Below are positions 2,571 through 42,219 of a stretch of DNA of 64,000 nt, one piece after another. The stretch's first letter is position 1. Each line of letters starts with the position of its first letter. Under the pieces are notes generated by a model, which was not told the DNA's origin, searched no databases, and saw only the letters and a list, made by a program, of their open reading frames with translations. The DNA is taken from IMG/VR virus record IMGVR_UViG_3300038463_000730, positions 1 to 64,000 of that record. The stretch is one strand, 5' to 3'. Both the position numbers and the translations under genes were made by a program.

Positions 2571-3425
2571 TCACCATTGTGTTGTCGGGCCTGTAAATGG
2601 ACCGAGCTTCATCGCTTCGCGTGCCCAAGCGCAGTTGGCGTTGTGATAACCGATCCATGAATCGGTCTCACTATTCGGCAGCATCCGCATGTATTGCATT
2701 TGACGCCGAATCTTCTGAATCTTGCGAGCTTGTGTACCGATGATCTCGGCCATGTGCCCGACCATTCCGATTCTCGAATCGATCCGAAGGATGTTGTTCC
2801 GATCCTGCTCGCATTCCTTCTGAACCTTCCGAACATCATCGTAGGTTCGAGGGTCTTCCAACCGCTGCGACCAACGTGAATACGGAGGATGCGCCCGCTT
2901 CATCATGGCAAGCTCGTGCTCACCTGAACGATACTCGTTCCAGAACTCCGGAAGCCGATCGTAAGAACGATTCAACTCGCGCTCCGCTTCCCACAGCGGA
3001 ACGTGCCAGAACTCCGGCGCCATGTACCACTCGAACTTGCTCTCCGGACTCGGCGAACGACCGGTCTGTTCGATCGCTTCAACCAAGTCGATTCCGATCT
3101 TGATCTCCCGGGCCTCACCGATATGCTTCGGTTTGTATGGTTCGTTACTGATCGATACCCCGCACCACAAACCAGGGAACCAATCGTTCGTTACTTTGGC
3201 AGGCAGCGTCGCAACACAGCTCAAGTAGTGCGGATGAAACGGCGCCTGGGCCAAGCGGACCAGGAAGATACCCGTTTCACTGGTCCGCTCTTCCCACCAC
3301 GCCGCGCACTCGTATGAGTCGTTACGGTAAACGTGCGGTTGATTGACTCGCACGGCACCGATCACTGTTCCGACCACGACACTAGAATAGGATTCGGGAC
3401 GTAGCTCGGTAGGAATGTGGATCAT
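2571..3425 (-). CDS. hypothetical protein
   Basis: 284 aa ORF. Confidence 0.7.
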   Translation of the reverse strand: MIHIPTELRPESYSSVVVGTVIGAVRVNQPHVYRNDSYECAAWWEERTSETGIFLVRLAQAPFHPHYLSCVATLPAKVTNDWFPGLWCGVSISNEPYKPKHIGEAREIKIGIDLVEAIEQTGRSPSPESKFEWYMAPEFWHVPLWEAERELNRSYDRLPEFWNEYRSGEHELAMMKRAHPPYSRWSQRLEDPRTYDDVRKVQKECEQDRNNILRIDSRIGMVGHMAEIIGTQARKIQKIRRQMQYMRMLPNSETDSWIGYHNANCAWAREAMKLGPFTGPTTQW

Positions 3426-5148: not shown

Positions 5149-5979
5149 GTGCCAAGAAGTAACAAAGCTGTAGTTAAAAAGAGCCTCGCCGGAAAACGTT
5201 TTGGAAAGCTAACCGTTGTCGCACCGATATTTCTAACCAAACGTAACCATTACGGATGGGAATGCAAGTGCGATTGCGGCGCTACCGTCTTGGCGTCAGC
5301 CTACGAACTGCGCTGCGGTAGCACAATCAGTTGCGGTTGCGCAAGACGAAAGCCAAAACCACCTCGAAAACCGCGAGTACTCAAAACCGATCCACCAATC
5401 AAACAACCAGATTCCTTTTGGGAAAAAGTTGATAAGACGGATGGATGTTGGCTTTGGGTCGCCGGAAAAGATTCGGGAGGATACGGTATATACCGTAAAC
5501 GTCCAGCTCATCGAGTTTCTTACGTTTTAGCGTATGGCAGCATCCCAGATGGACATATCATCTGTCACACGTGCGATCATCGTGGTTGCGTTAGACCGGA
5601 GCATCTATATGCCGGGACCGATGCTGACAATGCGCGCGACCGAAACATGTGTGGTAAGGGTGCGAGAAACTTCAGCGGTCCAGTAAAGAAAACTACACCG
5701 CTAGAGAAGTTTTGGGCGCGAGTAAATAAGAACCCTGATGGTTGCTGGGAATGGACAGCATCACTAAGTTCCAACGGTTACGGTCGTTTTAGTCCGACCT
5801 CTTGCTACCGTGATCGTGTTTTAGCTCACCGCTTCAGTTACGCACAATTCGTCGGAGCAATTCCAGACGGAATGATAATCTGCCATCACTGTGACAACAG
5901 AAAGTGCGTGCGACCAGATCACTTATTCGTTGGAACGAACGCTGACAATGCAAAAGATCGTATACTCAAAGGGCGATGA
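5149..5979 (+). CDS. HNH homing endonuclease with two HNH domains
   Basis: N-terminal GKRFGKLTV; two copies of FW.KV.K...CW.W...AHR.SY...ICH.CD...CVRP.HL..GT.ADNA.D; antisense to flanking genes. Confidence 0.9.
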   Translation: MPRSNKAVVKKSLAGKRFGKLTVVAPIFLTKRNHYGWECKCDCGATVLASAYELRCGSTISCGCARRKPKPPRKPRVLKTDPPIKQPDSFWEKVDKTDGCWLWVAGKDSGGYGIYRKRPAHRVSYVLAYGSIPDGHIICHTCDHRGCVRPEHLYAGTDADNARDRNMCGKGARNFSGPVKKTTPLEKFWARVNKNPDGCWEWTASLSSNGYGRFSPTSCYRDRVLAHRFSYAQFVGAIPDGMIICHHCDNRKCVRPDHLFVGTNADNAKDRILKGR

Positions 5980-22689: not shown

Positions 22690-23955
22690 ATTGCTTAAGT
22701 TGCGAGTTTCCTCACATTCAAACCCACGTATCTAACACGGAGTCGTCATCATCGAACGGTAACTCCCATACTACAGCAATCAAGCGTAGATATGTTGTGT
22801 AGCAGATTCGTAGGCTTGAATGCGAAGGCCAGGGTTCTCACCGTATGGTTTAGCCGATACAGGAAAACCCTGGCTTCGCAAGTTTATGCTTAGAGACCAA
22901 CCTACCAACTAACCCGCTCGGTTCACATACACTTTACCCCATATGACACTGATAGGCGTCCGGCATTGCTCGCCGATGACTCTCTCCTACCTATGGCCGT
23001 GTTGAGATTACCACTAGACCTAGACGCCTGGCATTATCCCGCCAATGGCTTTCTTCTCGGTTTCGTGATCCGATGCACACATTCAAGTGTGACACTGGTA
23101 TCTAGTAACACGATGCAACCCGTAACAGCGAATTAGTAACTCACGTATCACCCGGCACAACCCACTAGGCTTGCGTACCTACTTCCTTTCACACGGCGTT
23201 TTTACACGCCTCACCATGTATGTAGCCTTTCGGCATCACGGCGAGTTTTCATGTTACTCGCTTTCGGCCCCTACACACTTACCCGGTCAACGATTCCAAT
23301 TCACGCTCAACCTACACACCAGGCCAAGGCCAAGTTTTCAGCTAATCATGTTTCGGTTTCTCGCGGGTTAGCATGTAGCTTTGCGCGCCCCTAGCAGATT
23401 GCGAAGACAATACGCTTTCGGTACGGCGCTTCGCATACGAAGAGCTATCTCCTGTCCCTTAGCGATACGGCTTACAAGGCCATACGGTATACCCCAATGT
23501 CAAAGGCGCCCGGTACTAACTCACCGATAGCTTTCTCCTTTGACCTTTCGGTCACTCCGCACCCTCTAACACTGGACTAGTCGCGACCCCTTGGCATCGC
23601 AACCCTATCCCGTAGAGTGAGAGTCATGGTTACTGTCCCTTTCGGAACGCCAACTAGTTAGCTGGCCCGACCTACTCGTTTCGGATATACTATCTCGCCT
23701 ACTCTAGGGAGACAGTCTCTCCGTTTCTTATAGTCGTCCTACTTGCAACGGGTTCCCATTCCCGATGCGTTCAGCATTAGCCCACCTCTCCCGTCAAGGA
23801 GCGAGGTCATATGATGGGCGCCACGTTATGCCCTAGAGGCTAGACTTACTCCGAGGACCCCGTAGGGTAGGCATACCGCCCGGAGGGAACTAGCCACCCT
23901 ACCAGCGAGCGGCTGATAGGTGGGTCGTGGGAGTCGGATTCGGCTCCACCCACTG
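22690..23955 (-). ncRNA. candidate giant structured ncRNA (~1.3 kb)
   Basis: ORF-free; many minus-strand GAAA/GNRA hairpins (23225, 23541, 23410s) and long stem at 22822-22879. Confidence 0.65.
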
Positions 23956-23959
23956 CAAG

Positions 23960-23974
23960 CAATGGAATGGAGCC
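23960..23974 (-). promoter_or_regulatory. 15-nt motif copy 4
   Basis: Exact repeat. Confidence 0.7.
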
Positions 23975-24059
23975 TAGTCATCTCGCGGAACCGAATCGCG
24001 AGACCGCGGCAACCCCGCTTTTCAGCGGGGCGGCATCGCTGCGGCTCAAACCCGGACCA

Positions 24060-24074
24060 CAATGGAATGGAGCC
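24060..24074 (-). promoter_or_regulatory. 15-nt motif copy 5
   Basis: Exact repeat; preceded on minus strand by palindrome GAGCCTACCGATCGGTAGGCTC. Confidence 0.7.
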
Positions 24075-24124
24075 TACCGATCGGTAGGCTCTGATTCTTG
24101 TGAGAGTAGATCGCGCGCCCGCGT

Positions 24125-24351
24125 TGCACGTACCATGCCAGCCCAATTTGACGCGAGACAGCAATGAGACGACGCGCTGCGTTATGGCATGTTTCGAGCT
24201 ATATAATGCATAAAAGATACCTACAATGTCTTTACAATAACATTGTAATTGATCTGGTATGATCTAAGCTATATATTGCACGGAACATACCAATCATACT
24301 CCAGGCCTGGCACGGAACTTGCCTGCCACCCGCCGCTGGCACGAATCTTGC
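24125..24351. promoter_or_regulatory. cluster of sigma54 (-24/-12)-like sites, both strands
   Basis: TGGCACG-N4-TTGC exact at 24308 and 24337 (+); GG-N10-GC variants at 24185 and 24255 (+), 24125 and 24277 (-). Confidence 0.6.
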
Positions 24352-24368
24352 CTGGATAGAGCGACAAA

Positions 24369-24442
24369 CTGGTGAAAACTCTGGCAGATAACCTGGCAGA
24401 TAACCTGGTGAAACTCTGGCGGTAAAACTTGGCGAAACTGGG
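24369..24442. repeat. phased 10-12-nt CTGG repeats
   Basis: CTGGTGAAAACT, CTGGCAGATAAC x2, CTGGTGAAACT, CTGGCGGTAAAA, CTTGGCGAAA, CTGGG. Confidence 0.75.
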
Positions 24443-24693
24443 ATCAACCCAGCTACGACTCCGATATTCCCCGGCATTGCCCAGCGCTACTGAATCAAAA
24501 CCAGATTAAGCACATCGGTTATTTCAATTTCTTTTGGGAAACTAAAGATCTGGACATAATTCTTGGTCTGGAACGGATCTCTAACCTCGTTTCTAGCCAG
24601 AAGCCAAACCGTTTCCAGTACTTAGCCGATAAAAAAGAAATTTTACGTATCTAGCTGGCCGTTCCTGCTCCCGAATCAGCATACCTTTGAGGA

Positions 24694-24936
24694 TTGATGA
24701 GTAAAGCTCAGGACAGGAGAATACGGCAGAAAAGGCTGCGATCGAAGCAGCTGGAAGAAGCTTTGATTCGCGGTGAGATTCGTTTCTATTCCTTCATGAC
24801 TGCGCGAGTTCTCAATACTATCGTCGGAATCGTTATCGGCTTTTTAGTCGTGACATTTCTCATCCTTCTATTCGTAAAAGGAATCGAATTAGAGAAGCTT
24901 CTAGAGTATATCTTTGACATCGATCCGGATGATTGA
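24694..24936 (+). CDS. small membrane protein
   Basis: Basic N-terminus and one TM segment; GAGG RBS. Confidence 0.6.
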   Translation: MMSKAQDRRIRQKRLRSKQLEEALIRGEIRFYSFMTARVLNTIVGIVIGFLVVTFLILLFVKGIELEKLLEYIFDIDPDD

Positions 24937-24966
24937 AACGTAGTTCGAAACGTAGTTCGAAACGTA
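24935..24966. repeat. 12-nt tandem repeat (GAAACGTAGTTC)x2 plus partial
   Basis: Read directly. Confidence 0.8.
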
Positions 24967-25284
24967 TTAGTCTGGTCATTACATTTGTTATCATTTGATA
25001 TTTGGATTCCTTCCTATTCTTTGATCTCCGGGCTTTGTTTTTGGGACGCCAGGAGAGGCAGCCGGAATCTAATCCTGGCTCCAATCCAATCCTCGCGGCA
25101 GGAACGTGGCAAAGAATAATGGTTCGGATCGGCTCTTGATAGGCCAGAACTAGATATTTCAGTCGAGCCAGCTCAATCTCCCGTTTAATAGAGCAAAACC
25201 TGAATCATTCGGGTCGTTCCGGTAGTCGAGTTCCCGGGCCGGTACAACAGGAGGGGAACGTGGAATCACGGGAAAAGATCTGGA

Positions 25285-42203: not shown

Positions 42204-42219
42204 TGGCACCCGGTTTGCA
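42204..42219 (+). promoter_or_regulatory. sigma54-type promoter
   Basis: TGGCACCCGGTTTGCA fits TGGCAC-N5-TTGCA; intergenic, about 80 nt upstream of a gene. Confidence 0.65.

Follow-up and report, generated by a model that had tools for sequence, protein, structure and literature searches.

The analyzed window of 64,000 nucleotides is the first part of the 434,688-bp IMG/VR virus record IMGVR_UViG_3300038463_000730 (class "provirus," CheckV 100%). The genome encodes a baseplate-J protein, a tail sheath, a DnaE-type polymerase, an SbcC-like nuclease, a head protease, and 24 tRNAs and therefore belongs to a jumbo myovirus-like phage with no close cultured relative. The same sequence was found in several peat metagenome runs, in other peat runs only as contigs at low depth, and in no RNA run. 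Genes run leftward from about 22.7 kb to position 1, rightward from 24.7 to about 64–88 kb, and leftward again from 88 kb to the end of the record. The GC content, which is about 47% for the phage, drops from about 55% in the leftward block to about 46% in the rightward block of small genes exactly at the cluster described below, which sits in a roughly 2-kb ORF-poor region between them. This region is the only large divergent junction and a local minimum of cumulative GC skew, although the skew follows gene orientation and is not independent evidence of an origin.

The left part of the region, 22691–24123, contains no ORF above 112 amino acids, is C-rich on the plus strand (GC skew of −0.15), and carries two copies of CAATGGAATGGAGCCTA (at 23960 and 24060). 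Its last 300 nt (23820–24114) fold far better than shuffled sequences on both strands (z of −4.9 for the minus strand and −4.2 for the plus strand). No Rfam match was obtained at E ≤ 1, and no tRNA was found in the region. At 24068–24103 (+), a perfect 12-bp-arm palindrome (an 11-pair stem) is followed by the T-rich tail ATTCTTGTGA, forming a terminator-like hairpin for a rightward transcript that would end just before a cluster of sequences resembling −24/−12 elements of sigma-54 promoters.

The cluster begins with a leftward site, TGGCATGgtacGTGCAA, at 24126–24140 (−). It has two mismatches to the TGGCACG-N4-TTGC core, both of the commonest kinds, with Y before and A after. Next is the first copy of a 37-nt repeat, D2 (24185–24221, 73% identity to the second copy), which holds a weak plus-strand site (TGGCATGtttcGAGC, 24185–24199) running into TATATAAT, with TATAAT at 24202–24207. 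A perfect inverted repeat, TACAATGT-N10-ACATTGTA, lies at 24222–24247, midway between the two D2 copies; it is the only such pair in the genome, contains TGT-N10-ACA (24227–24242), and is a candidate site for a dimeric regulator. The segment 24249–24292 holds the second D2 copy (24255–24291), a face-to-face pair composed of a weak plus-strand site (24255–24269) and the minus-strand site TGGTATGttccGTGCAA (24278–24292, three mismatches). Over it lies a sigma-70–like TTGATC-17-TATATT (24249–24277). The plus-strand sites at 24185 and 24255 have three and four mismatches, respectively; both lose the T of the −12 TGC and run into a TATATAAT or TATATATT element. The D2 motif occurs nowhere else in the genome, which led us to reject the idea that D2 is a general promoter of this phage.

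Two perfect matches to the sigma-54 consensus follow on the plus strand, cCTGGCACGgaacTTGCc at 24308–24322 and, 29 bp further, gCTGGCACGaatcTTGCc at 24337–24351; the expected start sites are near 24334 and 24363. Both also have Y before TGG and R after CACG. They share all 11 core bases but differ in two of the four spacer bases and in their flanks. Downstream, at 24366–24440 (+), there are six CTGG(C/T)(A/G) units at 11- to 13-bp spacing, including CTGGCAGATAAC twice, an iteron-like array that is unique in the genome. The putative leader (24334–24700) folds no better than shuffles (z of +0.7). The first rightward ORF (24697–24936; 80 amino acids, ATG preceded by GAGG, one predicted membrane helix, no Pfam or PHROG match) lies about 345 bp downstream of the perfect pair and heads the block of small plus-strand genes that runs to about 64 kb. 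The nearest sizeable leftward ORF starts at 22690, 1.4 kb away from the cluster. Ten ORFs flanking the cluster had no Pfam match and only one weak PHROG hit of unknown function.

The sequence-only reading had noted six sigma-54–like elements within 230 bp, pointing into both gene blocks. We confirmed this observation: all six elements exist, although the two minus-strand ones start one base later than it placed them. "Six" overstates the case, since two sites are excellent, two are plausible, and two are weak, and the claim that they point into both gene blocks is only roughly right given the distances to the nearest ORFs. The pattern TGGYAYG-N4-DWGC gave seven hits in the window against 0.64 expected (the largest value in shuffles was 3), six of them within 24126–24351. 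In the whole record it gave 14 hits; apart from one at 318851, the others lie inside ORFs. Since this pattern was fitted after the fact, we also used the fixed a priori core TGGCACG-N4-TTGC. With no mismatches, it occurs twice in the genome, both times in the cluster (Poisson P of 7e-7). With up to two mismatches, there are 5 sites in 24100–24360 against 0.083 expected (P of 3e-8). With up to three mismatches, there are 12 against 0.71 expected, partly because each site also scores on the opposite strand; the densest other window has 5. The bare GG-N10-GC spacing occurs 10 times against 1.6 expected. Further single good sites are located at 42204–42218 (+) (TTGGCACCcggtTTGCAA, one mismatch), in an intergenic gap and codirectional with the plus-strand genes, and at 318851 (+); the former may be a further site of the same class.

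Sigma-54 holoenzyme binds its promoters as a stable closed complex and cannot start without an AAA+ enhancer-binding protein (PMC3844500), which usually acts from an enhancer 80 to 150 bp upstream. We therefore searched the phage genome for both partners, as the sequence-only reading had proposed. Neither was found: there was no match to PF00158 (Sigma54_activat), PF04552 (Sigma54_DBD), or PF04963 (Sigma54_CBD) at E ≤ 1, and no GAFTGA motif, only two loose GSYTGA matches that we judged uninformative. A host activator cannot be excluded on this basis, and palindromes that might serve as upstream sites are present at 24222–24247 and in the D2 repeats.

No relative of this phage that covers the region was found. 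A blastn search against cultured phages returned nothing, the flanking proteins have no relatives in IMG/VR, and sheath relatives at about 48% identity exist only on short contigs. Two metagenome scans, with a 42-mer of the left structured stretch and with the D2 motif, were also negative, and the window-specific version of the tandem pattern, with C after TTGC in both sites, found one unrelated contig.

We next asked whether tandem sites of this kind occur in other viruses. Two perfect sites 5 to 30 bp apart form a 22-base pattern that is present in at least 120 IMG/VR viral contigs, while the same pattern read backward occurs in none. Three or more tandem sites are present in 45 contigs, 19 of which were among the 120, which suggests a total of a few hundred contigs. 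In 596 Gb of species-representative prokaryote genomes, only 85 stretches match. Those inspected were coding repeats, exact tandem duplications, short phage-like MAG contigs, or ordinary duplicated promoters upstream of operons in sigma-54–bearing taxa; a few hits lie in Actinobacteria, although these are exact tandem duplications. The 120 viral loci fall into 66 nucleotide-similarity groups with GC content from 35 to 67%. Arrays reach nine perfect sites, and spacings cluster at 24–28 and 37–46 bp. Adjacent sites differ in their N4 in 73 of 101 pairs, so the core is maintained by selection rather than by recent duplication.

Positions not fixed by the search follow the sigma-54 consensus: Y before TGG in 85%, R after CACG in 72%, and W after TTGC in 82%. 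Imperfect neighbors vary most at the positions that vary in real promoters, namely, TGGCAC to TGGCAT and the first T of TTGC. The GTGCAA and TGGCATG variants carried by the minus-strand sites of the window occur in ChIP-bound Salmonella sigma-54 promoters such as glmZ, yeaG, and pspG (PMC3844500). No neighboring protein family is common to the arrays, and no protein is shared between this phage and the genes next to the other arrays, which argues for a host reader. None of 50 other array-bearing viral records, 17 of them at least 90% complete, carries PF00158, and none carries PF04552 above its cut-off. Together, these results point to a universal host reader, and sigma-54 holoenzyme is the only one known with this specificity.

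Arrays sit in long intergenic gaps (median of 714 bp between flanking ORFs of at least 90 amino acids), most often with a divergent layout, as in the window, and face the downstream gene in 56 cases against 30. In some phages, perfect sites are scattered over a few kilobases of ORF-poor DNA and occur nowhere else; one example has 12 sites within 3–16 kb of a 147-kb contig. Phage-specific iteron-like repeats often accompany the arrays. Perfect DnaA boxes are 36-fold enriched within 300 bp (15 against 5, P of about 1e-18), though only in 8 of 108 arrays. Several arrays (the loci designated L075, L122, and L069) are face-to-face palindromes, like the second D2 copy of the window. No Rfam family was associated with 19 array loci.

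A cultured example is Vibrio phage VCPH, a T5-like phage (Demerecviridae) that infects Vibrio harveyi, a host that uses sigma-54 through LuxO. It has a 1.27-kb ORF-free divergent gap upstream of the pre-early genes A2-A3, A1, and dmp, which holds three perfect DnaA boxes interleaved with five perfect sigma-54 sites, including two face-to-face pairs, followed by strong sigma-70 promoters. A second group of DnaA boxes and sites lies about 2.5 kb away, and seven of the eight best sites of this 120-kb genome fall within 3 kb. Vibrio phage 1.235.O likewise has strong sigma-70 promoters downstream of its sites. In T5 itself, the corresponding untranslated regions of the terminal repeat are the classic "injection stop signal" regions, described as carrying numerous repeats and palindromes with eight ordered DnaA boxes that are not thought to serve replication (Davison, bioRxiv 10.1101/866236). 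T5 has nine copies of a different 15-bp repeat there, TGTGCAAATCCGACA, and no sigma-54–like sites, and the paper does not mention sigma-54. The window resembles this region in that 22.7–24.7 kb has no ORF above 112 amino acids, contains many repeat families and palindromes, and heads the block of small plus-strand genes. It differs in having no strict or relaxed DnaA box within 20–30 kb, no terminal repeat detected in the record, and no recognized A1/A2 homologs. The comparison suggests a general design, a noncoding region at the head of the early genes loaded with sites for abundant host DNA binding proteins, with the choice of protein varying by phage.

[quoted passage not shown] The analysis itself establishes that the sites exist, are far beyond chance, and belong to a recurrent class of phage arrays whose free positions follow the sigma-54 consensus; that sigma-54 binds them, in a host that has not been identified, and what they do once bound are inferences from sequence. 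The sites would work either as promoters that stay silent until a host activator, or an unrecognized phage activator, fires them, or as nonfiring anchors that hold polymerase on this part of the genome, for example, as a roadblock or insulator, as a tether for the entering DNA, or as a sink for sigma-54. We consider the two about equally likely and could not separate them. Working promoters are suggested by the consensus-grade sites, the orientation bias of arrays toward the downstream gene, the position of the perfect pair ahead of the rightward genes, and the leftward sites facing the structured region. Anchors are suggested by the absence of an activator in 51 phages, arrays far denser than any promoter needs, face-to-face pairs that could not both fire, sigma-70 promoters already serving the early genes in the Vibrio phages, and the association with DnaA boxes in a region whose proposed role in T5 is to hold DNA.

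The interpretation offered by the sequence-only reading is partly supported. The sites are of the sigma-54 type well beyond chance, and its alternative, that the cluster titrates sigma-54 holoenzyme, remains live, being favored by the face-to-face pairs, the arrays of up to nine sites, and the lack of activator genes. Its inference that early transcription may use host sigma-54 is unproven, since no RNA run contains this phage and sigma-70–like elements also lie in the region. Its suggestion of a myxobacterial host has no support: the phage has about 47% GC and comes from peat, its moderate SD-like motifs and 24 tRNAs did not identify a host, and the same arrays occur in contigs of 35 to 67% GC and in a Vibrio phage.

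Several considerations weaken the sigma-54 reading, and the most serious, though less likely, rival is that the repeats are operators for another sequence-specific protein, either an unrecognized phage early protein or another host protein. Both perfect sites have C rather than A/T after TTGC, as do only 8% of array sites, which makes them GGCA-N7-TGCC palindromes with 4-bp arms that a dimeric protein could also read, along with the TGGYATG...CATRCCA palindromes. The second D2 copy and 24124–24140 read as sites on both strands, the CTGGYR array repeats the left half-site alone, nearly all flanking proteins are of unknown function, and T5 uses a different repeat in its analogous region. In one array family (family B), the sites sit where cosB or small-terminase sites would be, and Synechococcus phage MinM1 keeps one perfect site at the homologous position, while the Synechococcus elongatus control genome gives no Sigma54_DBD match; at least in that family, a terminase-binding or cos role is a serious alternative. 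However, the same core with sigma-54–like free positions recurs in 66 unrelated groups, no shared neighboring protein was found, the reversed control gives 0, and most arrays have W after TTGC and are therefore not palindromic.

The remaining alternatives appear less likely. The region could be the replication origin, with the AT-rich core (24195–24300, 69% A+T) as the unwinding element and the CTGGYR array and TGGCA-type repeats as initiator iterons; the sigma-54 likeness would then be secondary or would serve transcriptional activation or priming of the origin. The uniqueness of the array, the divergent junction, the DnaA box enrichment, and the iterons and/or DnaA boxes next to the sites at loci L231, L068, L081, and L098 agree with this doubtful possibility, but there is no DnaA box near the cluster of the window, no initiator or helicase-loader gene is recognizable beside it, only 8 of 108 arrays have a strict DnaA box, and in T5-like phages the DnaA-box regions are not the origins (Davison, bioRxiv 10.1101/866236). 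It is unlikely that the region consists of ordinary sigma-70 early promoters plus local duplications. While sigma-70–like elements lie inside the D2 repeats and the perfect pair could be a recent 29-bp duplication, sigma-70–like matches are at chance level (3 in 22.5–25.5 kb against 2.9 expected, one of them in the cluster), and the perfect copies keep all 11 core bases while their spacers and flanks differ. A chance 11-base match is expected about 0.2 times in this genome but occurs twice, 29 bp apart, and the class-wide enrichment stands. Least likely is action at the RNA or single-strand level, with hairpins in a transcript or in displaced DNA serving, for example, as processing or termination signals. 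Face-to-face units (24255–24292 in the window, L075, L122, L069, and VCPH) would fold as hairpins, and the 23820–24114 stretch is strongly structured, but most arrays are direct repeats without a partner arm, the putative leader is unstructured, and no Rfam family is associated with the arrays.

Compared to bacterial sigma-54 promoters such as glnAp2, pspA, glmZ, and nifH, the core and the exact GG-N10-GC spacing are identical, and rare tandem duplicates upstream of operons exist in sigma-54–bearing bacteria. The sites described here differ in being in a phage, in being clustered four to six deep and on both strands, including a face-to-face pair, in having no activator gene or recognized enhancer, and in lying 1.4 kb from the nearest leftward gene. 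Transcriptionally inactive and intragenic sigma-54 sites in Escherichia coli and Salmonella (PMC4591121; PMC3844500) give a precedent for holoenzyme sitting on DNA without firing and for proposed roles in interference or regulation, but they are single, scattered, and often weaker sites inside genes rather than consensus-grade tandem arrays in noncoding DNA of a virus. Clusters of strong host promoters at the entering end of phage genomes (T7 A1-A2-A3) and the T7 primary origin with tandem promoters also place several polymerase sites in a noncoding leader ahead of early genes, where they serve for DNA entry or priming as well as for expression; those are sigma-70 or phage-polymerase promoters that fire spontaneously.

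Phage transcription is normally described through sigma-70, phage sigma factors, or phage polymerases, and our literature searches returned no paper describing tandem sigma-54 consensus arrays in phage genomes, judging from titles and abstracts and with most subscription journals outside the searched collection. If sigma-54 is the reader, either a whole class of phages gates part of its program on host enhancer-binding proteins, which would be a direct line from host physiology to phage development, or these phages use parked polymerase as a structural or decoy element. A more far-reaching and only tentative version of the latter is that many unrelated phages, this one among them, exploit the one bacterial polymerase form that parks stably in a closed complex, using the arrays not as promoters but as protein-DNA anchors to hold or brake the entering genome (as proposed for DnaA boxes in the T5 injection-stop region), to insulate the early region, or to soak up sigma-54 and blunt sigma-54–dependent host responses. 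Both possibilities are open to direct testing, since VCPH and V. harveyi are a cultured phage-host pair carrying the same arrays, and the link to the T5-type untranslated region could bear on the long-open question of which host proteins act at the injection-stop region.

Other readings were considered and rejected. The left 24 kb could be a host flank of a provirus, in which case these would be host promoters, but its content is phage-like and mostly ORFan (an HNH endonuclease, DUFs), and GC rises gradually toward the other end of the record. Cultured relatives of another array family (family A), Caulobacter phage RLK and a spring siphovirus, do not carry arrays. A packaging signal was rejected for the cluster, as the likely large terminase gene lies at 203.8–205.6 kb, 180 kb away. 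Many other arrays do lie next to packaging genes: a Terminase_6-like large subunit is nearby in 20 loci and a GpA type in 13, and in one family the sites lie between a primase module and the small terminase.

The window region 22691-24114 comprises about 1.4 kb without credible ORFs. This stretch is C-rich on the + strand (and would thus be G-rich if transcribed leftward), and its last 300 nt are strongly structured on both strands (z −4.9 and −4.2). No Rfam match was found. The region may represent a long non-coding RNA downstream of the leftward sigma-54-like site, although this possibility is inferred from sequence alone. When contigs of one other peat run were examined, short contigs of much higher depth (28x and 44x, compared to about 3x for the phage) were found to match two non-coding stretches of this region, 23131-23301 and 23951-24083, exactly and then to continue into unrelated sequence. 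A third stretch (23310-23343) behaves in the same way at 74x in another run. Therefore, pieces of this structured region seem to be shared with a more abundant entity. A search of JGI metagenome contigs with a 42-mer from the region returned no match.

The GC content of the window falls from about 55-58% (1-24 kb) to about 45-48% (24-64 kb) at position 24000, exactly at the cluster. At the other end of the record, GC climbs to about 52%, as if the high-GC block continues across the record's ends. Within the leftward block, an HNH homing endonuclease (PF13392, E 1e-27) is located on the opposite strand at 5149-5979. On the other side of the cluster, a perfect 12-bp tandem repeat, GAAACGTAGTTC x2.7, lies at 24935-24966, just after the first rightward ORF, and is followed by a 10-bp repeat at 24982-25001. 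Outside the window, at 373599-374804 of the phage genome, ARAGORN reports three tRNA-like genes with two-base anticodon calls and a CTA-anticodon (amber-reading) tRNA, within a set of 24 tRNAs at 267-420 kb.

In phage T5 (AY587007, 9672-10409), the nine annotated "direct repeat D" copies of the untranslated region are a 15-bp motif, TGTGCAAATCCGACA, spaced 25-46 bp in places. The size and spacing of this motif are the same as those of the sigma-54 arrays, but the sequence is different; no protein is known to bind it. In the cultured cyanophage Synechococcus phage MinM1 (ON981384), a single perfect TGGCACGcggcTTGC (positions 3312-3326 of the locus) lies about 110 bp upstream of the small-terminase-like gene and is homologous to the tandem pair of a metagenomic phage family, which is odd for a host group without sigma-54. 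In Vibrio phage 1.235.O (MG592599), a lone perfect sigma-54 site (positions 230-244 of the locus) lies about 230 bp from the genome end, at the start of a 1.65-kb ORF-free leader that also holds several sigma-70-like promoters. Finally, one viral contig that carries a sigma-54 array (L112) also contains two Pistol ribozymes (Rfam RF02679, 53 and 60 bits), at 71-133 and 351-416.
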